This document shows, in pieces, positions 9,504 through 54,400 of a stretch of 64,000 nucleotides of DNA (position 1 is its first letter; every line of letters starts with the position of its first letter). The stretch is taken from positions 21,018,001 to 21,082,000 of the forward strand of contig NC_135667.1 in the NCBI RefSeq assembly GCF_964188315.1, written 5' to 3'. The translations under genes and the position numbers were made by a program. The notes below the pieces were generated by a model. That model was not told the DNA's origin, ran no database searches, and saw only the letters and a list, made by a program, of their open reading frames with translations. The stretch comes from Podarcis muralis (Eukaryota).

Positions 9504-12500
9504 TCATTCGTCCCCTGCAGTCATTCCTCTCACAGTGCCTTTCTGGCGTATCTGCAACAAAACAAGATCCTTCAGCATCTGGGTAACTTCTGGTAGTACT
9601 GGCTGTTTACTTCCACATGGCCTTGCCAGAAAGATTTGCCAATAAATTAAAAGTTTTTTTTATAAAAAAAAATCAATAATCAATTACAAGTGTATTTAAA
9701 TGCATCAGCATATTATCAAACATTATAGGGTTTGAGGGTTCAAAGCATATTTAATACTCTCTGGGCAAGACAGGAACCACATTTAATCCCAAAGTGCAAA
9801 ATAGGATATATCTATAAACAAAACACTTGTATGTACCAGTTTTTCCTCCCTTTTATTTTAAGGAGGAACAGATTCAAATAAGGGCAGGACTCCTATATAT
9901 TTTGTAAAAGTTGTATAGAAAAAGGTTTTAATCATCAAAAACTAGAAAGGTATATATTTACAAATATATAAAATATGTTTACAGAAGCATAACATATTTA
10001 TGTAACTATACATTTACAGACATTAAAAAACTACAAATTGAGGAAACAATGGTAAGCACATTAGCAGTTAAATATTTTTAAAAGAGGGGATTTTTGCAGT
10101 GCATCTTTTACAGCAGTGGAAAAAACCTATGCCTATCAAATTATCTTCTTCCACATTAATATCATATAGGACTGTTATCCAATTGTGGAAATCTTCGTGC
10201 CTCTGTGGGGAACTTTTGGTGCTCCATTTGCTGCTGAACTACAACTCCCATCATCCCTCACCACTGGTGATGCTTGCAGGGGGTGATGGGAGTTGTAGTT
10301 CAGGAACATATGAAGGGCCAAAGCTTCTCTCACCCTTAAGCAGATCAACTGAGTTTTAAAACAACCAAATCTACATAAATTTGCATATGACTAAATGCTT
10401 TTGAAGAAGGGAAAAAAGTATACCTGATTTTAGATGGCATATGTATAGGGTGCATAGATATCTATAAGTTTTAGATGGCATATGTCTTGGAAGTGGAGTC
10501 CCCTCCTATGAGAGACTGAAGAGGGAATGCCTCTCCCAAGATGGGGTCCGCCATTGGCAATTTTCACGTTTTAGGATTCGAATCAGGGTTTTGCGCTTCT
10601 ATATTAGTGGATCAAAACCACATCGACTAAATAAAACCTATGCCCTAGTTGGAAACTCCTCCTCTTGTCAGGGGATCTGCACCTACTACAACAAGTGTGC
10701 CATAGGGACAGCAAATGTAAAACAGGAGTACCGATCATCACTCAACAGAACAGTGGCAGCGATTTTTTGGAAAATCCTGCCTGACAGATCCGCGTAGCAA
10801 CTCGGTTCATTGAAATCAACAAAGCCTCAAGACTAGCTGCGGGAAAACAAACAGGAAAGGGTTTTAACTAAGCTTCTACAAGTGAGAACTGAGCTGGCCA
10901 TGGAAGGCCTTTTTGGGAAGGGAGTTTCACAATAAGGAAGCCATGAAAAGAAAAGGCCTGGCTGCTGGACCCCACCCGCCTTACTCTCTGACAACAATGG
11001 CATCTGAAGCAGGCCACCTGTAAATGATCTCAGAGATCAGGCTTGTATGGGCAAAGCCATCCTTTCAGACCCAGTGACAGGGAAAGTTGTACAGTGGTAC
11101 CTCTGGTTATGTACTTAATTCGTTCCGGAGGTCCGTTCTTAACCTGAAACTGTTCTTAACCTGAGGTACCACTTTAGCTAATGGGGCCTCACGCTGCTGC
11201 CGCGCGATTTCTGTTCTCATCCTGAAGCAAAGTTCTTAACCCGAGGTACTATTTCTGGGTTAGCGGAGTCTGTAACCTGAAGCGTCTGTAACTCAAGGTA
11301 CCACTGTACTTCTGGCCTTCCACCCACAAGAGTTCAAGCACAAAAGTAAGGGAAGCTCTCACAACCCAAACCAAGTGCCCTTTGCACCCGCAAACCTGGT
11401 CCTCTGCCCCAAAATACCTCATCAAGCTCCCTCTGTGTCTCTTCCTCCATCCGTCGAATGTCAGCCATGGTTAAATCCACCCACTTGTCCAACCAGCAAA
11501 ATAGCTGCCTATGGAAGTTGGTAAAGAGGCGTCTTTCTTGCTGTAGGAAGAGAAAAAAGGCTTCAAGAAAACAGGATGACAAGAATGCAAGAGACCTTGA
11601 AGTGGGGGATAATAGTCTACACTGAGGGGAAAAGTCCCTGGGTTGCATTCTGCAGAGCAAGCTCAAGATGGGGTTTTTTACCCCCACCTCTTCCCGCCCC
11701 TAAAAAAACCTTTGCTAATATTGCTCTGCCATCTGTTACTATCCAAGCAAGCTCCAACGCCTCAGCCTGATCTTACCTTTTGGATAAATTTTTCCACTCG
11801 GCCCTGAAGACCCCACCAGCGGAACTTCACGCTCACAAGTTTGTAGGCACACATGTGGGGGCAATCTTCATTGTTGGCTAGTTCCCGCTAATGGACGGGA
11901 GATAGGGGGGAAGGGGAAGGGGGAGAAAGGAAGAAGCCAGGAAGATTAGGCCTGGAGTTGCCGATGAAGTTTCAAAGCAAACTTGTGGAGATTTCTCTTA
12001 TAGGTGAAACATCTGAGGGGGATTTGCAGGGATGAAAAAGAGATTTACCCCCTTTTTATATTTCATTTAGAAGTATTTACACCATGCCTACTAACCAAAG
12101 TTCTCGAGGCGGCTTGCAATGTATTTAAAACACAACAGAACAGACAGCGATACATACACCTTTGCCCTGATTATTGTAAGTTTTCCCCCTCCCCTTATTC
12201 TCCAGAGTTCCTACAAATGCCATTCTGCAGCTAAATCTCCTGGCTGTAGAAGCAGATGGGTGCTAATTCCACATGAGTAAGGGCATGGAGTGACTGCTGT
12301 TTATGTCTCTCACAGCCCCAGCCCTGGCAGCATTAATAGAAGGTGGTGGGTGTAGCACCTTCCAGTTTTGATAAGACCCAGCCTTGCTCCAAAAAATCCT
12401 ACAGCCGGTTCGTGCACCCAGTGACCACTGCAACACTTGATTTCTCTCTTCCTGCCATGACTAAAAGGTCACAGAGAAGGCTCCATCTTTTGGGTCTGGT

Positions 12501-15500
12501 GCCACAGCAAGCGCACATTTTGCTTTGCTAAGATGAAATCTGCAGACCCCTGGGGTCCCACTACCACCGCCAAAGCCTGTCTTCAGAACAACGAAGAGGC
12601 CCGAGATGTATGGATGGGAGGGAGCAGGACACACTTACGGGCTGGTTCGCAAGTTTTGCTATCATCCGTTTATCTATTATTTCATTTATGAATTGCATCC
12701 CATAAGGTGTCTTGAAACAAATTACAAGACAGGGGACTGGACGTACCTTCCAGTCAGGACCAAGAGGCCCTCTGCCCGTCTTCAGTGATTTGAAAAGAGC
12801 TGGGTCTTCATCTGGCTTGTAATCCTGAAAGATAAGAGAGCAGAGATGAGAATGTCAGCAGTATGAGATACAGGGGGGCAGAGATGGATAAATGCCATGA
12901 AGATCTTTGTTCAGCAGGTAGAAAAGCAGTCAGAAAGGGCAGATTCCTCTTGACACAAAAACAGGGCCTGATAGCATCTAAAAACCAAGAGCCAGCCCTG
13001 AAAGCAAAAGGGTACTATTTTGGATACTACGAGCAGTGCAAAAAGTTGAGCAACAATGTGGTTTTAGTGGTACCAGCTGTTGCCACCACTACTGTTACCT
13101 TCACTCTGATGTGGAGAGAATAGTCACTTGGTGGCGAAGAGAAAGTGCTCAGCATATGCTCAGAGACAAGCTCTCCTCTCAGGGGCCTCTCCTCACTCAG
13201 AGTGGGAGATCTCCTTTCATCCCTTCTGTAGGCCATGGGCCAGAAGGAACAAATGAGATCACAATGTGGAGCCTGGCCAGATATAAGCAAACTTCCTTTC
13301 TCTGTCAATGTTGGGGGGATAAAGGAGGGAGAAGGAAGAGGAGCGAGTTGTATGTGGAAATGAAGGCCCCTCAGGCCAGGTAGTGGTGGGCAGGATAGCT
13401 GTAGCCTAGAATCGCTGGGGTACTGTTCTCCTGAGCTCTCCCAATCTAGAGCAATTCGACAGAACAAATGGTTCCAAGTAGGGTGTTTGCAGATGCTACA
13501 ATAACCAAAAATATTCCCTTTGTGCTCACGGCTTTCACACTCCAGAGCCACAAAGGGATCCTTCTTTCCTATCAAAAGCAGTCGGCTGGAAGGGCGCTTT
13601 CCCTCCCAGAATTCCCCTGCCTTCTGTGTCATGTTAACCTTTGCCAAACACTCTTCCAACTGCCAGACAAAAACCAAGGTTGCCTCTTACATCATCTGAC
13701 ACTTGCGTCCGATCAGCGACATCTATATGGACCACCTCAACATCTTTCCAAGTTTCCGCATCGAGGCTGTGGACCTGCAGAGAGAAGAGTTTTTATGTCC
13801 TCACCCGAAACAAAAATGGGAGTCGCCAGCACTGAAAGTTTGATTGGGCTTTGTTGACTTTTTAATATGCTTCCATATTATGATATATGCTTTGTACTGG
13901 CCTAAAGACAACGAGTGTTAGGCAATCAATGTGTTCAATTTAATAATAATAATAATAATGTATTTTACATCAAAACACACAAGATTTGGGTGGGACCTTG
14001 AGAGAGCCGAGCATAAACAAATGCCAGCAAACCCCAAAGAACTCAAGCAAAATTGTAAAGTAGAGTTGCCCAAACCTCCTCCACAATGATGTGAGATATT
14101 GATATAGTCATACAGAAAATGATTACTTCAAGTTATTGCTGCTAGATGTGGTTCTAAAAGCTATTGAATCATAAGGTGTACTAGTTTTGCACACATGGCT
14201 TCTCCATTATGGCTTTATTTTTGCTAAATAAATCATGACGCAGAATAATATGTCATGTGTTGTTGTTCTTCCCCTGAGGTTGTATTTACCTAATTTTAAG
14301 ACCTGCTAAAAACAGATGATTGTTATGTTTTCATATGTAAAACCACAGAATTCAATTTTCTCATGACTGTATAGAAATTAAATAATAACATACATAACCC
14401 AGATTTGCTTCAATAAAAATCACAGAAAGTTTAATACCTTAAGACTGCATCCCTCAATACTGCCAAATATTTCAGTCATTTAGAAGAGAAAAAGACCTCT
14501 GTAACCCCAAACTGCATCCAATAGTTAATTATAAAACATGTTTCTCTTCCATACAGTTTCCTCTAAAGTGCTTTCAAGATCTTTGCAAGAACAAGTGCTT
14601 TATTTCTTATTATATATGCAATGGAACCTTAACAAAGTCTAAATTATTTATCCCAGCTGGTATCTTTCCTGGATCTGAACTGATTTCCTGTGTGTGGTAT
14701 TATTTTAAAGGCATTTTTATGTTTAATTTTTTGTGTTTGTTTTGTATTCAGTTGTTTTTACATATGCAACTATTTTATATACGCCATTGTATTGTAAATC
14801 ACTTCAAGATGCCTCACAGGAAGCAACTCATAAGTGACATAAACAACAACAACAACTATTCCGGATACAAAGTATTATCTTTGTGCAGAAAGAAAAAATG
14901 CTGGTTAATCAAATACTATTTCCCCACCCCTTAATAATAAAACAGTGCATCTGTGCCCATGGTCTTTCTATTAATAGAGAGTACAATTCAGCAGGATTTG
15001 GGCACCCTGGTTCTGTGGATAAAACGTGGTGTTTCATTCCCATCACTTACATTGTCTTGGTCACCTAAATCTGGTTTGTGCCAGGTTTCAATTTTGATGA
15101 AGAAATCATCCTTCATATATTCATTCTGTCCAAAAAGGAAAGGGTGGGGAGGAGAGAAGAATGGTTACCCAGAATACTTTGTGGTAACAAGAGCACACGC
15201 AGACCTAAAGCCACACATGGCTTGAGCAGACATATTACCCAGAATGCTCTGCGACATTCTGGGATGTGTGTGTGTGTGACTCATGAGAAGTGGACTTCAT
15301 GGGGTAGAAGGTGTGTCATAGCTTACTGGAGATAGGCGAGGACACAGATGTACCCAGGGAATCTGACGGAGTTGGGGTTCACTGAGAAGCGCTGCCTGCC
15401 CACCCACAGATGTCCCTTCCCCAAGTCACTTACCGTAATAACTGCAGCAGACGGGACCACAAGAAAGAAAAGACAGAACATGTTAGTTCAGGATAATGAA

Positions 15501-18500
15501 ACGAAAAACCTTCCCTAATCAGCTTGATATAAGTCTTCTCTAGCCACAGTTGCCATTTATGTAACCCAAATCACACAGGACAGTTTTAGCCCAATATATC
15601 CAGCAGGTTAGACAAAGTGTGGAGAAGCTATGGTCCTCCAGTTGTTGCTGAACTGCAACTCCCATCAGCCCCAGCAAACATGGCCAAAACCAGGGAAGAT
15701 GGGAATTGTAGTTTAGCAATATCTAGAGGGCCAAAGGTTTCCCACACCAGTTTTGACTGTCCCTGAACTCTGATAATATTTCCTGCTGGACTGGACAGGG
15801 CGTGCGAGTTTGTGTAGAAACCAACTGTACAAATGTAAAATTTGCATTTGTTGGTTCTCCCACTTTTGCCGCAGGACACACCCAACACCGTCCAAAGAAA
15901 GTTGCCCAAATGAGAATGTGGCCCTTGGCCTATGAAAACTTCCCCAGCACTTGCTCAAAATGAATGTTTATTCAAACTCAGTTCTGTGGAAACTTGAGGT
16001 TCCTCTGGGCTTTGTCAATGAGAAGAGCAGTAATGTATGAAAAGAGTTTCCCAATAGGCTGCTTGTTGTAGGAGTCTGCTGGGTGCATTTCTAGGTTATA
16101 TTCTCAGCTTAAGCAGAGGAGTGATGAATGGAGTGTACAGTACTTCCAGAATCTCTGCCAAACAACCCCTGGATTTTTGCCACTCAGCCATTATTCAAAA
16201 GGATCATTCAAGATAGAGAGTTTGAAAAAAATGAGAACACTCCAGACAAATTTGTTCTCCTACCAAAGCATCTAGGTAGGACGGGGTTTTGCAAACATGG
16301 GTCGCCAGCTGTTTTTGGACTACAACTCCCATCACCCCAAGCTAGTATGACCATTGGTTGTAGTCCAAAAACAGCTGGAGACCCAAGTTTGGGAAACCCT
16401 GACCTAGGGAGTCCCAGTTACAGACATAGCCCCTTCTCCCATCCCTCTCCCCGGCTCACCTGTTCGACAATAGGGGTAGGCATTCCAGGCTCTCTCGTGA
16501 ACAACTAGGGACCCCTCAGGGGCGAACATCTTAATGAATCCAGGAACTTTGCTGCAAGAGAGAGAAAAACAGGGCGTCAGAGGAAGCCCATGCCTTTGGA
16601 TGCCCGTGCCCAGGAAGGACCTTACCTCTGGAGGTGGTAGATCTTGTGGGTGAACTGCCCCCTTTCCCCTTCACACTCGTAAGGTTCATTTTTTAGCACC
16701 TCAATCCCTTCGCCGCCGCCAGTGTTGTTCTTGCTGGCTTCAGCAACAGAGAATAACTGCCCCACCTGATACTGAAGAGGGAAAGAGCAGAGGTTGGTAA
16801 TGGGCATTTTAAACAGGTGATTCAAGTTCAACATGTCCCAAAAGGAACTCATCCCAGTTCAAATTTGTCCCTTTGCAAAACAAAGTAGTTGCCTTCAGGT
16901 CACAGTTCCAAGTTGATCCAAATGATCCTCAAGAATTTTTTTCAGTATTCAAAATGCTCCTGTGCTGAAGTATAAAATAAAAGTATGAAATAAACTTAAG
17001 ATGAGAGTCTATAGAGTGAAAAGCACAGATGAGAGAACGAACTTGAAGATAAAACTAGAAATCGTTCAAAGTTCTAAGCTGAAACAAATGCAATTCAAGT
17101 TTTGATCACTTGGCAATTCTGGAAACTACTTTCAGATGTAGTTTAGAGACTTTTGAACTAATCTGATGAAGTCTGTTAAGCTCATTCCAAGCACTGGGAA
17201 AGAGAGAAGGGGAAATACTCCTGCCCCTTTGGGCTTCAAATAAGGCACAGGTCTTGGGGACGAGGAAGGCCATAGGAGTCACTTGGCAAGGCCTGCCTGC
17301 CCCAACTCCTGCTGGGTGGGGAGAGAACAGGGAGCCAGAAAGAGAGACAGAAAAGGGCAATGCCCTTTTGGTTTTTGGTTCTGGCACCACCTATGAAAAA
17401 CAGGAAGAAAAGCACCCTAAACTTTCTGCTGATTTATGCCAACCCATTATCCCTCCCTCCCCCCATTGATTAACTAGGGGGTCAGCAAAGTTGCACACTT
17501 CCTAATACCACTGCATGTAAATGGAACTTACCTCCTCTACGGAGCAAGGCAGCACAACCCGGCTGGTTTTGGAGGATGGAGATAAAAGCAGCATGGGGGG
17601 GGGGGAGGGAGAGGAAAGAGAAACAAGAGTTAGAGAGGGAATCCTCCAGTGCCCAAGCCCTCACACTCCACTGCCACACGCACCAGATAAAAAGCACATA
17701 CACACTTTATTCACCCTGGAATGTATTTAACAGACCGTTCAACAAAGACCACTAAATAAAGCACTACTGTTGCATCTGAACTATCATTATCAAGTTTCTA
17801 GAAAACTGCCACTAAAACTAGTCTTAAAACAACTTACAATATGATATATCAAAGGGTACAAAAATTTAGAAATACCAAAGAACAAGCCACAACGTAAAAT
17901 GCAGCTTTAAAACAGTAACACTGAATTAATAAGCAAGCCTATCGAATACCACCAGAGGCCTGGAAGTAGAGGAAGACCTTACCCGGTGCCAAAAGGTATT
18001 AAACTTGACACCAGGTGGGCCTCACCGGGGAGACCAATCCATAGATGGGGTGGGAGGAGAGAGAAGCCAAAATGTTCTTTCCCTTGTTGCCAATCACAGG
18101 ACCTTTCTTGGAGGAAGAAGAAAGCCTCTGATGACAACCACAGGGCATGTGTTTGGCAGAGGCATTCTGTTAGGTATTGGGGTCCTGAACTGTGAGAAGC
18201 TTTCTAGGCTAAAATCAGAACTCTGAATTGGTCTCAGGAACCCATTGGGAGCCACTGAAGCTGGGGCAAATGAGAATAATAGGTACAGTGGTGCCTCGCA
18301 AGACGAAATTAATTGGTTCCGCGATTTTTTTCGTCTTGCGATTTTTTCGTCTTGCGAAGCACGGTTTCAGAAAAGTTTTGGAAAAGCTTCAAAAATCACC
18401 AAAGTCTTCAAATCCTCAAAAAAGGCTACCACACCGCGTGCTATGAGTTGCTCCTCGAAGTCAAGTCACAACTGTATTAACGGTGTTAAGAAAAAGGAAA

Positions 18501-19983
18501 CAAACTTGCAAGACGTTTCCGTCTTGCGAAGCAAGCCCATAGGGAAAATCGTCTTGCGAAGCAACTCAAAAAACCAAAAACCCTTTCGTCTTGCGAGTTT
18601 TCTGTCTTGCGAGGCATTCGTCTTGCGAGGTACCACTGTACTTGTTGTCTGGTGCCTATTATCAGTTTGTCAGCTGCACTGAACACTCGCTGCAATTTCC
18701 AAACAGTCTGCTAAGGTGAGCACATATATAGCACATTGCAATAACATACATATGCAGGACCCTGGTATCTCAAAACTTGAAGGCCGTGTACATGGTATAC
18801 CTTTAAAGTACCATTAGAAACACACGTTCCCTTCAAAAAACTATGGGAACTGTAGTCCATTGAGAGCTGTTGGGAATTGCAACTCTGAGTGGTAAACTAC
18901 AGTGCCCAGAATCCCAGGGAGGTGGAGGAGATGTGCTTTAAAGGTGTTGCAGAAGTTTCGCTGAAATCGAAACACAAAGCAGATTGTCTCCTTTGCCCTG
19001 AGGAAGAGCACACTAATATGCACGGAGAACCTTCCTAAGCTCACAGTGCAATCCTAAACAGGCCTATACAGAAGTAAGCCTTACTGAATTAAAAAGGGCT
19101 TTCTCCCTGGAAGTGTGCTGCATCCCTTGAGGCAATGTTATTGTATGTGCCAGATGAAATAAGTTGGAGTGCCATCTCCCCACCCCCAAGGTCTTTTCTC
19201 CTACAATTCTCCTCCAGCGCATGCCTCAGCCAGCTTTAACAAAGATAAATCTGCTGCTGCCAACTTCCCCTGAAACAGTGCTCAGCGTGATTTGCGGTAA
19301 CACTCTGAAACTGCAAACATTTCGTGTTTCCTCCGAAATAAGTTCCTGGAAATCAACAGGCCTTAGTTTAAAGAAAGTGGGCCGAGCAGAGCACAAAAAT
19401 TATGACGGATTCAGGGATCCGAGGATGGCACTTCTTATTTGTTCTCCTCCCTCACTGATTATTCCATTGAGCTTTGGTGAAAAAAAACATGGGTGGAGGG
19501 TGGGGAAGAGGGAAAAAAAATACATTGAAATGGAGAATAACGGTATAAACTATAAAGCAAGGCTCCTCCTGTCGGGAAAACATGCCGGGTCAGGGACCCC
19601 AGATGGATTGCAGGACTGGGTGTGCGAAAAACCTCCTCGCAGGGTAAACCGAATGGGCCAAGGCGACCCCCCACTTCTGCTTTTCAGAGGCATATGAGAA
19701 AGCGCCGTCCCTTACACTGCAGAAACAAAAGGCCCCATTCATCCAAAATATCAGATCTCACCCAGCGCACATTATTAGGCGCTCTAAAACCCCCCAGCAA
19801 AATACAGAAGGAAGAGCCGTAGAAAGGGGCAGCCATATGTAGACGGGTCCCTTGTTTATCGCCCACCCATTTTTAGGAAAGCCCCCTCCCCACTGCCTAG
19901 TTAACCCTTCCCATGCCCTGCACCACCCACGCTGGCGCCCCCCACACCCCTCCCAGTACTCACAACTCTTTGATCAGCACCAT
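9504..19983 (-). CDS. PITPNB-like: Class I phosphatidylinositol transfer protein, PITPNB-like (271 aa; 11 coding exons)
   Basis: Exons (minus): 19983-19964, 17562-17532, 16771-16626, 16551-16460, 15441-15434, 15125-15051, 13774-13691, 12824-12747, 11887-11777, 11540-11418, 9551-9504. All GT-AG. Sizes 20/31/146/92/8/75/84/78/111/123/48 = 816 nt, the PITPNA/B exon pattern. Translation [48 protein letters not shown]...[13 protein letters not shown]...KFRWWGLQ...[16 protein letters not shown]...[15 protein letters not shown]. Confidence 0.96.
11092..11306. mobile_element. Tc1/mariner-type MITE (215 bp) in PITP intron 10
   Basis: TA|cagtggtacctc...gtaccactg|TA; reverse complement of 3366-3580. 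Confidence 0.85.
18286..18638. mobile_element. Tc1/mariner-type MITE (cgtcttgcga family)
   Basis: TA|cagtggtgcctcgcaagacgaa...cgtcttgcgaggtaccactg|TA. Confidence 0.85.
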
Positions 19984-20460
19984 CCTCCCGTCCCTCCGGC
20001 ACCCCGCACGCCAAATGCACCAGCCCTTTTCTTCCTCTTCCCCCCTACCCCGGCCATTGACGCCACTTCCGCCCTCACTCTAGCGCCCGCTCGCCCGCAC
20101 CTGCCCGCGACGACGCCACTTCCGCCCTCACTTGGGCTTCGCCCGCGCGGGCGAGCCGGAGCAAAGGCCGGCCACGTTGGGGAGGAGCAGGTCGAAGGGG
20201 GGGCGTTCGGTCCTCTTGATTGACAGCACAGGGAAGCCGGGGAATGACGGGACGCTGAGGGTTGCATTGGACACAAATGTCCACTAGGGGTCGCGCTCGA
20301 ACCGGGTGTTCGGAATCGGCTCTGTTGAGAGTTCTTCTGAGATATGTGCAGAGCGCCTTTCTAGTCGTATTTGAGAAAGGGCAAGATCACGGACCTCCTG
20401 ACTTTCATGCCTTTCAAGGGTTTGGTACCCCACGCGAAATTGGTACCCCACGCGAAGCCT
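19900..20460 (-). promoter_or_regulatory. CpG-island promoter of the PITP gene
   Basis: CpG-dense region around and upstream of ATG 19983. Two identical GGGCGGAAGTG (GC-box + ETS) modules at 20059-20079 and 20112-20132. Confidence 0.8.
20278..20294 (+). promoter_or_regulatory. Putative CTCF site
   Basis: tgtccactaggggtcgc, one mismatch to CCACTAGGGGGCGC. Confidence 0.45.
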
Positions 20461-20539
20461 TGTCCCTTCTGTTTTTACTGAACCGTGAAAGGGACAGGAG
20501 GAGACATATTTGCAGGGTATCCTGGAAATTCCTTTCAAT

Positions 20540-22616: not shown

Positions 22617-29748
<7,132 letters not shown>

Positions 29749-45400: not shown

Positions 45401-48400
45401 AAGGGTAGGAGAGAGAGAGAGAGAGAAGGCGGAAAGGGGGCGGGGGAAGGGGAAGGAAAGGTAGAAGTGGAGGAAGGTAGGGATGGGAGAGGAAGGAAAG
45501 GGAGATTAGGAGGTGTAGGGAGGAAGTTTGGGGTGGGAAGAGCAGTGGCTGCTCTGGCTCTTTCCTCCCCTTTACCTCCAACTCCATGGAGAGACTGATG
45601 CCTTTCAAACATTTTAGACAGTAGCTCCCAATACAAATCCCTCGGCATTATAAGGGAAACTGTGTTTGCCTCATAGCACATAGTTTTGCCAAAGTTGTGC
45701 TGCCTGAAAAGACTACCCAACCTGCCATTTCAAGCTGTGCATTGCCGTGGGAGATCAGTAGTCATGGGCAATATTTCTTCCAAGGATGCTTCCAAATACT
45801 CTCTTAAGTTTCCCTTGTACACTGCTATTGAAAGAAACAGTAGAACTAATGAGCTTAGTTCCTTCTTGTTGATTATCATTCCCTCACGTATGCTGTTCTC
45901 CATGTGCGTAGCAAATATTGTAAAGTATGTGTTGGGGTGCCCTCCCGTTTGCTTGCTAGGTCATTGCCTTCAAATGCATACATATTCTAACACCTCTTGC
46001 CTAAAATTGAGAGTAAACTTTGTAAAAGCTGGGCAGTAACACAAGATGATCTAGTGCTCAGGGTCTAATTTGGGTTTCTTACTCTTTGCTGGAGGATTGG
46101 TTCTGAATAAAATACTTCAAAACTCTGCTTAATCAGTGCCTTCAGTAATTGAGAATGGGAAACAAATAACCAACACTAAAACCATTTTCCATTTCCAAAT
46201 TCCTGATGGAAGATGTATGCCTTGACCTATGTTTGAAAAGATGTCCCACTTATTCCAGTAATGCTGCTGGTGCTCACAATCTGTTTCCATCTCTCCAATA
46301 GTGGGGAACATCCCATATGAAGCCACAGAAGAGCAGTTAAAGGACATTTTCTCAGAGGTTGGGCCTGTCGTCAGTTTCCGGTGAGACATATGCCTGTTAG
46401 GATTTCCTGAATCAGAGAAGCTGAGTCTGAAGAGCTGAGAAAGCTGGATGAGGATGTGGCATGGGTGGTGGTGGTAGTAGATACCATAGGATCTTAAGTC
46501 ATGGGTGGGGAATCTTGGCTAAGAAATTTAACTGAGAAGTATTAAGCACTTTGTATGCAGAAGGTCCCACCTTCAGTCTTTTGCACTTCTCAGTCCAACC
46601 TGCCTCACATAGTTGTGAAGATAAAATGGGTGGGGTGGGGTGGCTATGTATACCAACCTGAACTCCGTGAAAGAAAGGTGGGATATAAATATTACAAACC
46701 TCCAATAAAATGTTAAGGTAGCACAGGGATGAGGAATCTGTGGTGCTCCAGAAGTCATTGGACTCGTATCTCCCATTTGCCACAATCCCAGTGGTCAGAG
46801 ATGATGAACGTTGCCGTCCAAGAACATCCAGAGGGCAACAGGTTCCCTGTCCTTGAGATATCATATGCGGGGGAAAGCTTTTGTCTCTTTGAGACCCTGG
46901 AGAGATGCTGCCAGTAGATAATACTGAACTGGATAGACAAATAATCTAATCTGATTTAAGGTAGCTTCCCATATAATAGGACAGTATATAGCCAGTTAGC
47001 CCAACTGCAGTGCCCCTGATCCCCAGCTTTCACGAAACCCTTTCCCCTCCCTCTCATGCCTTTCTGCTCATTACAGTTTGTTTTCTGTGCTTGTTGGCTA
47101 GATTGGTGTATGACCGAGAGACGGGCAAACCAAAAGGTTATGGCTTTTGTGAATATCAAGACCAGGAGACGGCACTCAGTGCCATGCGGAATCTGAATGG
47201 ACGTGAGTTCAGTGGGAGAGCCCTGCGTGTGGACAACGCAGCCAGCGAGAAGAACAAAGAGGAGCTGAAGAGTGAGTCTGAAGGCCTTGTGGAAGGGAGG
47301 AGGGCGGGGAGGCAGCAGCTGCCATGCGCTGCCAGTCAAGGTGTTCATGACAAGATGAAGATCTCTGGTTCTAACCCAATCTTCTCTACTAGGCCTGGGC
47401 ACTGGGGCCCCCATCATTGAGTCGCCCTACGGAGACCCTGTGAACCCTGAAGATGCTCCCGAGTCCATCAGCAGGGCTGTTGCCAGCCTCCCACCAGAGC
47501 AGATGTTTGAACTGATGAAGCAGATGAAGGTCAGTGGACAGTATGGCCGAGAGCAGTCAAGCCAAGTGTTTAACAGCTCACCTGGTAGCAGCCGTAAGTG
47601 GGTAGGAAGTTCATGTAGGCTAGTCTTTCCTCTCCAGTCCACACCCATTTCTCACTCTAGGTGCAAAGAGAATAAAGCTTATTTCACCACGACTAGCACA
47701 GAAACCAAAACAGTCTTACGTAGGCATGGTGCAGCACTCCATATCACCTCCAACCTTCCACTTGATAAAAAATGGTTGGTTGGTTTTAACTGCGCTGCTG
47801 AGAGGCTCACCCATAGCTTGCATTTTCATACTGGTTGCAGAGGAGAAGGCTTCTCTGTGGCTACCAGAGATATGAAATAGTTTCCCACGTCTTCTCTCGA
47901 GTTTATTTGTGTGTTTCTAATTGTGAACTGCCCTGAGATCTTTTGATGAAGAACAGTTTATTAATAATAATAATAGCCTGGACTGGGGAGAAATGCTCTA
48001 TGCCCCCCCCCCCCAATATTGCTGAACTACAGCTCTCCATCATCCCTGCCCATTGGCTGTGCTTGCTAGGACTAATGGGAGTTGCAGTTTAGCCACATTG
48101 GGAGGGCCAAATGTTCTCCACACCTGCTTTAAATGCTGGGGAATTTCAATCCAGCTGCCCTGTGTGCTTTCCCATCCTCTCTCTTTCTCTCTCCAGCTCT
48201 GTGTCCAGAACAGTCCTCAGGAGGCTCGGAGCATGCTGCTGCAGAACCCTCAGCTCGCCTATGCTCTGCTGCAGGCCCAGGTGGTGATGCGGATTGTGGA
48301 TCCGGAGATCGCTCTGGTATGCTTGCGACATCTCTTGCCTTGGGGAAGCGGGGTGGGGGGTGGGATGTTGCCCCCGAGGTGGGGCCATGTGTTTCTGCAA

Positions 48401-51400
48401 CATAAACACTTAATAGGCTTTACTCTGCCATTTCCCTTCCCTAGAAAATCTTGCATCGGCAGACGACCGTCCCAGCTCTGATTCCAAGCGGCCTGCAAGC
48501 GGGTCCAGGACAAGGGCCTGGGCCTGGGCAAGGTCCTGGGCCTGGACCTGGACCTGGACCCGGACCAGGGCCTGGTCCTGGTCCTGGTCCTGGTCCAAAT
48601 GCACAGATGAACCAGCCAAACGTCCCCTCCTCCCAGCCACAACCAATAGTAAGAGTTTGTTGCTTTGAGTAGAATCTTATCCCTTGCTCTGTGGGCTGAG
48701 TCTTATTTCCCAGTTGTAAATGATACGCTAGTTGTCTATGTCACAATCTGTTGATGTCCTTTCCTATTTGTTGTTTTTATGATGGTTTTAGTTAAACCTT
48801 TATTGAACATGAATATATCCATTACAAATAATTTGATAAATTTCATAGAGTTTTGATTAGTCCTTTATTAGTAGCTATATTTGTTATATTAGCATTTAAA
48901 TGGGTTAATACAGTGGGGACAAACTTAGGACCAGAAATCAATTGCCCACCTGAGTGAGAATAAGGCTTCACAATCTGTTTTCATTCCCTCTTTCCAAGCA
49001 GGGGGGTATGCATGTCAATGGAGCCCCCCCTATGATGCAGCCACCCATGCAGGGAGGAGTGCCAGCCCCAGGGCAAATGCCAAGCTCTGGCCCTGGCCCC
49101 TTGGCTCCTGGAGGTGAGTTCTTCTCTGTGGGGGTGTGGGGGGGGTGTCTTTCCCAACATCTGTAATTGATTTGGCAGTCATAATTTTTGACTCTGGGTC
49201 CCTGGGTTCCAGGGATAAGGAGATATAGGAAACCTCAGGGCAGGAAAGGGCTGAATTTGGCCACACATGGCAAGTGGAATCAAGGTTGGCAACATTGGAA
49301 GACTATAATCCTTTGCACATATAACTCTGGGTCAGCACCAGTGAATGTAGAACGTCTTTCTTAAGAAACATGCATAGGGTTAAGTGGTTTAGCCAGGTTG
49401 AAAATTGAGATAATTGGTGTTGATAATATTTAGTGATCTGATGTGGAGGATAGCAATACAGTTTGTTTATTTTCATTTTCTAACATTTTTAAAAACCCTT
49501 CTTTCTTGGTTTTATTTTATTTATCTTTGTCTTTTGCGTGCCTTGCTGGGCTTTCACTTTGCTGTTTTAAATCAGCTTTTTATTTAACAACTCATTTGAC
49601 AACGCAGGCATTCATGAATTCCATGCGAGGGAGCAAGAGAGCCAGAGGAGGAGGGATGGGTTGCTCACATCCTCCCTCCTGCAGCCCACTTCTGTGCTAG
49701 GTATGGGAGAAGGAAAGCCTCTTTCTCAATGGAGAACGCTGGAGGAAGAGGCATGGTAGAATGCTTTTTTCCTTCTCTTTTTTCAGTAGCCTTCTAGGAA
49801 GATGAGGCTTTCCTTCTTTCCACATCCAGCATGGAAACACAGGCTTCTGGTCTGATAGTGGTCTAGTAAACATAAATAAATTGCAGGGTATTTGTTGGCT
49901 TGTTTACAAGACTGGTTTTGAATCCCTGAGTCTCCCAGCACACCCTCATAATCAACCCAGTGCCTCCTTTGCTTAACACGGCTTTTTCTCCCCAGGTGGC
50001 ATGCCAGGAGGTGGCCCGATGCTCTTGGAACGTGGTCAAGGTAAAGCATATGGCTGCCTTCTGTCACTTAGCCAGCAGAGGGCGTCACTCCTTGAAATGC
50101 TTCCCACTCCCTCCTTTTTCTTTCATACAAAGTTAATGGGCTTGCTTTGTTCTGGTGGTGGAGGCCAAGGGGTTTGTGTGTGTGTGTAGATGTTGCTGCA
50201 TGTTTGTTATTCCACCTGGTTGCACTGAAATTTACCTCTGGTTCTGCAAGTAACAAAACATCCTTTTGGAATTGCCTTTTTGAGCCAGCCTGCAAATCCC
50301 ATTTTAGCCCTGAGGCTCCAACCTCCAGGTGCTCCCAGAAGCTCATGGAGCTGATGGACATAAAGAAACAAGTCTATTTTTTGCATTTATTTATTACTTT
50401 TTCCTGTCAGGTCCCAGGGGCAAGTTGTAGTATTATTCTCAGTAATAACTGGCTGAGAAGGAGAGACCAATAGCCCAGCTCTGAGTTCAGTGGAGCTTAT
50501 TCTCAATAAGCCATGCAAAGGATGGCATCTTTAGTGAGCTTTGTTGCTAAGTGGGGGGACGGGGTTTGTACCTGTGTTTCTCATGCTCAAAGAGTCCCCA
50601 TTCGTATTTGTTATATAGCCTTTTTTTGGCCTGATTCACACATAATGCTAAGCCATAGTTTGCTGTGTGTGTTGTGTGTGAACCCTGTCCAGAAGCTGAG
50701 CGATAGTTTCTTCACTGTCAGCAAACCACTATCTGGAGCTATGGTTTGTTTTAAACTATGACTTGGTGTTATGTATGAACCCAGCACGCTTCCTCCTGGG
50801 TGGCTGATGCAGATCACCACCAAAAAGGAGGTCCAGATAAACACTGAAGGATCAATGGATGCCCCCAGTCAAGGGAGAGAATGGGACAATTTCTTTTATG
50901 TGCTTCTCCTTAGATGGCTTGGCTACAAGCAAGAGTCTTGTTATTGTTTGCAGCTATGTGGCCCCTAATGTCAGTAGCACTGAGAACTATATCAAACTTT
51001 TACGTATAGTTATTCCGAGTCCAAAGATCAACATAAAATGACCAGGGGGGAAATGCACAAAAGTCTACTTTTCAATTGGAATAAAAAGCTTGAAGACTTT
51101 CAAGAAACAGAAACACAAAGCATTACGTTGGCTGCTGTAATCAGGAAAACTTCTACAACCATACTTTAAAACTTGCAAAAGTTAAAATACTTAGCCATCT
51201 GGGTAGGCTTATCTAAACAAGAACGTTTTAGCAGGCGTGGAAAAGAGGTCAGTGAAGGCCTATTGGCTTGACATCAGTAGGCAGGGAATTCCAAAGTGTA
51301 GGCACAGCCACACTATGGAATCATATTCTGAGGGGGTGGTCCCTCCTTTCATTTAAAGGGAAGTGTCTCCAGAGCTGTTCCAGAAGAAGAGGGAGGGGCA

Positions 51401-54400
51401 CTCTAGGCAGGTGTGCGTCTATGCACACACAGATGCAGCAAGTGCACCTCCTGTTGATGTGTCTGCTCTTTCTCCCTCTCTTCCTGCTGCCGGGCCAGGG
51501 AACCTGCAGCTCTCTCCCGTGGGACCTGCCAGGCCTTCCTCTATTGAGCGAGTACAAGGTACCTGTAGTTGCGGTTGGCTCCCCTTGCTCATTGCATGCC
51601 CTGGGGGGAGTATGCAAGACAAGGCCTCTGCTTACTTTGGGGGTGCAGGCCACATGGCTCAGAGAGTGGTGTGGGACATGCTGTCGTGGGGAGAGGGAGA
51701 AACGCCATCTTTGTGCAAGGAGGCTCCCTGTTGCAGGTTCGTTTGATCACCTGGCCTCCTCCTGTTGTTAACAAAGACTTGGGGTGGCAACACAAGTGTT
51801 GAGTATGTGGCAGGCAATTCAAAGCCTGGAGCTTTTGAAATTAACCCATCTCTCTGCAACTGCATCTGCGCCTACCTGCCCTCTGTGAAGCTTGACTTTC
51901 CCCCTCTTTTGTCTCAAGTGAAGCCAATGCTCACAAAGTGGAATCGCGCTTCTCTCCCATGATTTTAATTCCCCCTGCCATCTGCCTTCCCAACAGTGCC
52001 CATGCCGGATCCACGGGCCCCCATGCAGCGTGGCCCAATGCCAGCTAGTGGTCCACCACCCCGAGGCCTTCTGGGAGACGCCCCAAATGATCCACGTGGG
52101 GGAACTCTGCTGTCAGTCACTGGAGAAGTGGAACCCAGGTAGGCAGAATGGCCTAGAACTTCTAAAATGGGTGTTAATAATAATGGTAGGCTATTGGTAG
52201 CCCGGACTGCTTGCATTAATTCTAAAAATACAACTAGGAAGCAACTGTGTCTCTTCCTCTGGAGTCCTGGGGACTTGCCACAAGGGGAAGCTGTAGTCCT
52301 GGTGGTTTGTTGCAGGTCTGTCTGAGTTGCGCCACTGTATTGCAAGTGGGAACTCTCCCAAAAGAAACAGGAAGGTAGCAAGGCTGGAACTCTTCTGCCG
52401 GCCATCTTCTTTTATGTGTGCAGAATGTTGTTTTGTTGCAGTGCATATTTTTTTTTTTGTAATGCAATAACATTTGAGCCTCCTACTTGCCTCTTGGAAG
52501 TCCAGGCAGAGATTGTCTCACCTTGTTTGCTGTGTGAGAAGAATGGAAACTGGGTTTTGATGTCTTTTCTCCTCCTCCACCCCCCTCCCTTCCCATCCTC
52601 TTCTGCAGGGGTTACCTTGGGCCATCGCACCAGGGGCCTCCTCACCAGGGCCCCCCCATGCACCACATGGCTGGTCATGACAATCGTGGGCCGCCCCCCC
52701 ACGAAATGAGAGGTGGGCCAATGGGAGAACCGAGGCCTTTGATGGGAGAGCCACGAGGTCCCATGATGGACACCCGAGGTGAGAGACGGTTTCAGGGTCA
52801 AATGAAAAGGGACGTTTATTTAATGCCAGCGGTATAAATCCCAGCACAGTAAAGGATCCCTCAGGGGAGTGATATATGAAATGAATAGCAGTTGGTGTTT
52901 TGTTCCCCTTTGTAGCAGATGCAGATAATAAAATAACTTGTACAATAAATCACACAATAACGAATAGAAATAATTATACAAGTATACCATGTTCTAGAAG
53001 ATCAAATTGTATCCTCGCCCCAAAGCAAAACTTCCCCGGCTACAAACACACACAAAATCAAGCCACGAAAATGTTAAAAATCAAACTGGTACAATCAGTT
53101 ATTTAATTCTCCCTAACTTGGGCAAGTAACTCCCAGGTTTGCTTCTCCGTCTATCAGATGTGTTAAGTTTGATGGTCTTCAATGCAGGTGGAAGAGATCC
53201 AAGGGGAATGGAGCCCCGAGGCATGGATGGCAGGGGCATGGAGCCCAGAGGAATGGAGCCCAGGGGAATGGAGCCCAGAGTGATGGATGCCAGGGGCATG
53301 GAACCCCGAGGGATGGAGCCCAGAGTGATGGAAATGCGGGGCATGGAGCCCAGAGGAATGGAACCTCCTCGGGGCATGGAGCCTCGTGGGATGGAGCCCA
53401 GGGGCATGGAACCTCCTCGGGGCATGGAGCCACCCAGGGGCATGGAGCCCCCCAGGGGGATGGAGCCCCCCAGAGGCATGGAACCACCCAGGGGAATGGA
53501 GCCACCCAGGGGAATGGAGCCACCCAGGGGGATGGAACCCAGAGGCATGGACTCCAGGGGCCCTGGCCCCAATCCAAGGGGTCCAATGACTGGAGGCATT
53601 CAAGGCCCTGGACCTCTTAGCATGGCATCCACTGTCTCGCAGGGGCCTCGACAGGTATGTGGGGCAACCGTGGTCTGTTGCATTTTCACTGAGGGGTCCT
53701 TGTTGCCAGTGCAAGGACAGCCTCAGTTGGTCACGCCAGCCGATTGGCATAACAATCCAGTCTCCACATGGAGGTGGGAGAGGGAGGGAGGAATCTTCGT
53801 CTTGAATGCTCCCCCTAGTTGGTTCCTGACCAAGACAGGAAGTGGCTTCAGGGTTGACTGATCACTTAGATAAAACTCTAGACCAGGGTTTCCCAAACTT
53901 GGGTTGCCAGCTGTTTTTGGACTACAACTCCCATCACCCCTAGCTAGCAGGACCAGCAGTCAGGGCTGATGGGAACTGTAGTCCAAAAACCACTGGAGAC
54001 CCAAGTTTGGGAAACCGTGCTCTAGAGCAAGGATGGGGAACTTGCACCCCTCCTGAGATTGCTGGACTCCAGCTCTCATCGGCCCCAGCAAAGTTTGATC
54101 GGTGATTACTAGATTCATAGTCCAGCAACATTTGAAGTTGGGGAGTTGTGTCACAGGTTCCCAACCCCTGTGCTGGATGGAAAGGCAAACACTCTGGCCG
54201 GCCCTGTGCCTTTGCAGCAGAGAACAATTCCTAGTGCAAAGCTCAGAACCCAGCAGTATGAGAGATCATTAGAGAGAGCTGAGTCCTTAGCTGGGGAGCT
54301 GACTGTGGAAATTAGGGATTCTCTCCTAATACTCTACCAAGCTTTTCCTAACAGTTATACTTAATCCTTTCTAAGTCGTTGGCTGGAAAATCCATGCATT

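Follow-up and report, generated by a model that had tools for sequence, protein, structure and literature searches.

Which member of the class I phosphatidylinositol transfer protein (PITP) family is encoded on the minus strand of this 64,000-nucleotide stretch of Podarcis muralis DNA (the window; NCBI RefSeq assembly GCF_964188315.1, contig NC_135667.1, positions 21,018,001 to 21,082,000)? It might be PITPNA (PITP-alpha), PITPNB (PITP-beta) or a third paralog similar to the pitpnbl genes of fishes, as a first-pass annotation of the window had proposed. Sequence comparison supports the last of these, a third class I PITP that is orthologous to fish pitpnbl. We are confident that this is the P. 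muralis pitpnbl ortholog, and that it is a functional, ancient and conserved gene. It is real, intact and conserved, but no new discovery: the spliced product matches RefSeq XP_028558150.1 (P. muralis "phosphatidylinositol transfer protein beta isoform-like") at 271/271 residues, so the gene has already been annotated, and its 10.48-kb region is an exact match to record OZ076966.1 of GCA_964188315.1.

To place the protein, we started a word search from a full-length, platypus-like relative and so collected 1579 class I PITPs; an earlier library search with exon 3 had returned mostly exon-sized fragments, with few full-length proteins usable as seeds. The top ranks were taken by "beta isoform-like" proteins of opossum, platypus, turtles, snakes, lizards, a salamander and frogs (79-96% to the query), below which came vertebrate PITPNB and PITPNA at about 73-78% identity. 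A maximum-likelihood tree of 45 rows was built in IQ-TREE, with two very distant outgroups left out. The lizard protein joined that of a snake (support 100/98), then those of turtles and the opossum/platypus-like proteins in an amniote "beta-like" group (95/94), and finally an 18-row clade that added amphibians, the coelacanth, teleost and ray "pitpnbl" and a chimaera protein (99/97). This third clade includes the "beta, like" proteins of Triplophysa, Oncorhynchus and Mobula, as well as the coelacanth gene listed as pitpnbl in UniProt. PITPNA (100/98) and PITPNB (83/87) formed clades of their own, and the third clade grouped with PITPNA (90/85).

Three residues mark the third clade. N33, G207 and R208, derived as markers in this analysis, are present in 96-100% of 23 clade members, including the teleost, ray and coelacanth pitpnbl proteins. 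Among the 15 alpha and 19 beta rows they occur in no more than 10%, and position 33 is E throughout. G207 and R208 lie shortly after the WW motif. Four substitutions relative to human beta (Y24F, E33N, Y57F and K86R) had been put forward earlier as distinctive; rat PITP-beta and human PITP-alpha do have other residues at all four positions, but only E33N holds across the clade. F57 is common to other lacertids and Rhineura, with Y in the other squamates compared, and R86 is replaced by K in the turtle compared (Emydura).

The names given to these proteins in public databases are inconsistent. A Xenopus laevis "pitpnb" and a chimaera (Callorhinchus) "PITPNA" group within the third clade in our tree, X. 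tropicalis "pitpnb" shares a 90%-identity cluster with the X. laevis protein, and the echidna and Tasmanian-devil members bear "alpha isoform-like" names. The Emydura macquarii protein XP_067420004.1 (271 aa, 243/271 identical to the lizard PITP) is even labelled "interleukin-27 subunit alpha isoform X2", a label presumably carried over from the adjoining IL27 gene.

The gene itself is complete. Its 11 coding exons lie between 9504 and 19983 on the minus strand and comprise 816 nt, encoding 271 aa and a stop; all are bordered by AG/GT splice sites, with the ATG at 19983 and the last base of the TGA at 9504 (Table 1). The complete 271-aa reading frame reported in the first-pass annotation can thus be spliced from this strand, although the span of the coding sequence (CDS) is 10.48 kb rather than the ~12 kb given there. 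We defined the exons from stop-to-stop translations and the DNA at each junction. Ten were obvious in this way, while the eleventh came from a pattern search of the intron. When scanned singly against the Pfam family IP_trans (PF02121), 6/7 exons matched, colinearly over profile positions 17-245, and exon 7 did not; positions 97-99 of the profile are left free for the eleventh exon. A scan of the identical public protein against NCBIfam gave no match, as expected of a library aimed at prokaryotes.

This eleventh exon is an 8-nt microexon (exon 5). Exon 4 ends in phase 1 and exon 6 begins in phase 0 after its only usable AG, and joining the two directly reads ACA GAA TGA, an in-frame stop. The intron pattern search gave a single fitting candidate, at 15441-15434, preceded by a pyrimidine tract and CAG and followed by GTAAGT. 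Read together with the last G of exon 4, the microexon supplies residues 97-99, V-I-T, as in other PITPs. The length of 271 aa holds only with this microexon, because exons 4 and 6 are otherwise out of frame. Alternative donors and acceptors at the junction were rejected, since they led to an insertion of 13 residues, to acceptors other than AG or, from AGs further upstream, into stops. An equivalent 8-nt microexon sits at the same place in P. muralis PITPNA and in the turtle (V-V-T), snake and Lacerta agilis orthologs, with one synonymous change in L. agilis. The turtle, snake and Lacerta CDS, when built with the lizard exon lengths, give exactly the public proteins. The microexon is an old feature.

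Could the frame clash between exons 4 and 6 instead be a sign of decay, in an unexpressed copy that merely looks intact? Direct splicing does hit a stop, several public lizard models are distorted at this point, and expression in P. muralis is something we infer. Nevertheless, we consider this very unlikely, though the least improbable of the alternatives. The microexon, with its strong acceptor and donor, restores the frame and is conserved in Lacerta, snake, turtle and PITPNA, and there is a CpG island at the 5' end of the gene. The ratio of nonsynonymous to synonymous substitution rates (dN/dS) is also incompatible with decay: comparison with Lacerta (18 differing nucleotides, 3 differing amino acids) gives 0.05-0.09, with the snake 0.03-0.05, and with the turtle, where dS is saturated, about 0.06. 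As turtle dS was saturated or undefined by both NG86 and YN00, we used the closer species, Lacerta and the snake. The lizard gene is under strong purifying selection.

The same junction has caused problems in public gene models. The microexon was missed, leaving wrong residues between CRT and NEYM, in models of Podarcis (A0A670K8W2), Phrynosoma and Lerista and in 1 Sphaerodactylus entry; a UniRef entry from platypus is likewise distorted. In the 272-aa A0A670K8W2, the sole difference from our product is VFGQ for VIT at the junction. RefSeq models render the microexon correctly. The microexon is a practical warning for work with public gene models, several from lizards and platypus being faulty where it belongs.

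Table 1. Features of the PITP gene and its surroundings, in window coordinates.
Feature	Position	Strand	Remarks
Coding exon 1	19964..19983	-	ATG at 19983; MVLIKE + 2 nt; donor GTGAGT
Coding exon 2	17532..17562	-	31 nt; completes F7
Coding exon 3	16626..16771	-	146 nt; carries T58, K60 and clade-specific N33
Coding exon 4	16460..16551	-	92 nt; carries E85, N89, C94; phase 1 end, ACA G/GTGAG (slash marks the splice site)
Coding exon 5 (microexon)	15434..15441	-	8 nt, TTATTACG; between ctgctgcag and gtaagt
Coding exon 6	15051..15125	-	75 nt; first residues NEYMKDDF
Coding exon 7	13691..13774	-	84 nt, 28 aa; alone without Pfam match
Coding exon 8	12747..12824	-	78 nt; carries S165
Coding exon 9	11777..11887	-	111 nt; carries K194, W202/W203 and clade-specific G207/R208
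Coding exon 10	11418..11540	-	123 nt; carries F224
Coding exon 11	9504..9551	-	15 codons + TGA
CpG-island-like stretch	19750..20500		GC 0.61-0.63; CpG observed/expected 0.79-0.92; spans exon 1 and upstream
SULT1-type sulfotransferase gene	22617..29748	+	307-aa product; head to head with PITP; Pfam Sulfotransfer_1 on exons 25870-26471
CSTF2-type gene	46992..48478, 53130..53858	+	RNA recognition motif, hinge, long MEPRG-type repeat run
Simple repeat in CSTF2 region	48413..48740		GP/PG- or TRT/WSW-type dipeptide repeats in all frames
Intron motifs (LNYNSH...QQQ...)	10175..10348, 15540..15719, 16204..16354		among several introns; motifs on both strands

A second alternative is that the gene is simply the lizard PITPNB, its "beta isoform-like" name reflecting divergence only, with no third gene involved. 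The best match in the PDB is indeed PITP-beta, by a small margin (519 vs 510 bits), the N-terminal residues MVLIKEF and LPCSV look beta-like, and direct evidence of a separate PITPNB locus comes from squamates other than P. muralis. However, the PITPNB clade, which contains snake, gecko, bird, marsupial and rodent proteins, stands apart from the lizard protein in the tree, and an approximately unbiased (AU) test rejected a single clade of the amniote beta-like proteins and PITPNB (delta lnL 31.6, p = 0.013). The koala carries both PITPNB and a third-clade gene, and the SULT1 and IL27 neighbours are unlike those that the first-pass annotation had named for PITPNB. The lizard protein is also equidistant from alpha and beta, at 76-78% identity. 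We regard a divergent PITPNB as extremely improbable, and the proposal of a third, pitpnbl-like paralog was upheld by the 18-row clade and the AU test alike. The idea that the gene stems from a recent, reptile-only duplication of PITPNA or PITPNB, for which the high overall similarity to both is the only argument, can be dismissed just as firmly, given orthologs with N33, G207 and R208 from cartilaginous fishes to marsupials, exon lengths common to lizard and turtle, and a gene order of which lizard, turtle and opossum have parts in common.

A separate PITPNA locus is present in the same assembly and encodes a different protein. It lies on record OZ076969.1, another chromosome, between an SLC43A2-like transporter of the major facilitator superfamily and an INPP5K-like Exo_endo_phos/SKICH gene. 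The two P. muralis proteins are 76.8% identical, and the genes share their 11-exon layout, including the microexon.

The third PITP had been described earlier as apparently absent from mammals. This fails, since RefSeq entries from 12 marsupial species, platypus and echidna are found in the opossum protein's 90%-identity cluster; among mammals, only placentals seem to be without it. In the protein-database word search, no placental, bird or crocodilian protein ranked with the third clade, theirs being ordinary PITPNB and PITPNA. Going by sequence relationships, fishes, amphibians, turtles, squamates, monotremes and marsupials have all retained the gene. Because the third clade includes cartilaginous fishes, the label "ohnolog", implying an origin by whole-genome duplication, is plausible.

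The genomic neighbourhood was also examined. Pfam matches confirmed the neighbours named in the first-pass annotation, SULT1 genes and CSTF2, with SULT1-type exons at 25.9-26.5 kb and, for a second gene, at 60.0-60.8 kb, and the RNA recognition motif and hinge of a CSTF2-type gene at 47-48.5 kb. A divergent SULT1 gene lies upstream of the PITP gene in P. muralis, Lacerta and the turtle, and SULT1 also adjoins it in another reptile contig. The CpG-island-like stretch is likely the promoter between this divergent pair. In the turtle the order is SULT1, PITP and then an IL-6/IL-11-family gene, while in the opossum PITP is followed by a 245-aa gene without a Pfam match, which may be IL27, and then by APOBR. 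The order SULT1 / PITP / IL27 / APOBR is common to lizard, turtle and opossum in parts only. We take this block to match human 16p11.2, which holds APOBR-IL27-NUPR1-SGF29-SULT1A. Many duplicated gene families are common to that region and to chromosomes 17 and 22, the homes of PITPNA and PITPNB. This sharing fits an origin of the third PITP in the vertebrate genome duplications.

Two further observations concern the surrounding DNA. Similar short motifs (LNYNSH...QQQ...) turn up repeatedly in the translations of several introns, on both strands, which suggests copies of one interspersed repeat family resembling short interspersed nuclear elements. The CSTF2-type gene lies between the two SULT1 genes, unlike human CSTF2, which is X-linked, and its region contains a simple dinucleotide or hexanucleotide repeat.

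What would the protein do? In rat numbering, the inositol-binding residues of PITPs are T59, K61, E86 and N90, and the phosphatidylcholine (PC)-binding residues C95 and F225 set class I apart from class II (PMC8266687). All are kept in the lizard as T58, K60, E85, N89, C94 and F224, with numbering one lower, as in human PITP-alpha. S165, K194, W202 and W203 are present too, so that every functional residue listed in the first-pass annotation was found where it had been placed. The protein, searched as its identical public copy, aligns end to end and without gaps to the solved structures of PITP-beta (E = 2e-155) and PITP-alpha (E = 1e-152). One third-clade member is encoded, intron-free, on a 909-nt Logan contig, which we read as a transcript of its source species. 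From its conserved residues, the lizard protein is most likely a phosphatidylinositol (PI)/PC exchange protein working like alpha and beta. It is a single-domain cytosolic protein of 271 aa, and its cavity most likely takes up a single PI or PC molecule for exchange from one membrane to another. The gene arose before the jawed vertebrates diverged and lies in a SULT1 - PITP - IL27 - APOBR block. It has been kept widely, but appears to have been lost in placentals, birds and crocodilians.

Some points weigh against the reading of the gene as a functional pitpnbl ortholog of this history. When the two very distant outgroups (branch lengths 3-4) were included in the tree, the third clade became a polytomy and the outgroups fell inside the ingroup; the clear result comes from the tree without them. 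The sister relation of the third clade to PITPNA is moderately supported and unrooted. Around salmonid pitpnbl, a 10-kb reach showed no neighbours with which gene order could be compared. The apparent loss in placentals, birds and crocodilians is drawn from annotated proteins at the top of a protein-database search. Finally, both the PI/PC exchange activity and the expression of the gene in P. muralis are indirect conclusions.

Teleost pitpnbl, whose zebrafish representative has reportedly been called PITP-gamma, belongs to the same orthogroup as the lizard gene and has about 77% identity and the same length class, although its branch is long (0.23). Any functional data on the third PITP come, to our knowledge, from fish only. 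PITPNA (1UW5, 1T27, 1KCM), the nearest clade, aligns to the lizard protein gap-free over 270 residues at 77-78% identity and has the same PI- and PC-binding residues, WW motif and S165, but carries E, N and K in place of N33, G207 and R208. PITPNB (2A1L) likewise aligns gap-free, at 76% identity, with the same binding residues and a similar N-terminus, but forms a distinct clade and has different neighbours. Mammalian PITPNB has two splice variants (PMC8266687), whereas a second alternative C-terminal exon of the PITPNB type was looked for near exon 11 of the lizard gene and not found. Our literature searches found nothing on the third PITP gene in amniotes, in agreement with its earlier description as unstudied there.

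Perhaps the third PITP is not redundant with alpha and beta, but has its own counter-lipid, membrane target or tissue, marked by N33 and G207/R208, with independent losses in placentals, birds and crocodilians. We regard such a distinct role as possible but doubtful. If true, the third PITP would be the lost neighbour of IL27 and SULT1A in the block that we take to match human 16p11.2.

This is an ordinary gene of modest evolutionary interest. On the basis of placental mammals, PITP reviews recognise two class I proteins (PMC8266687). Most other vertebrates, marsupials and monotremes among them, also have a third, strongly conserved class I PITP. Its significance is mainly comparative: PITP-alpha and PITP-beta have been knocked out in the mouse, which appears to have lost the third family member, whereas fish, frog and lizard models should retain all three class I PITPs.

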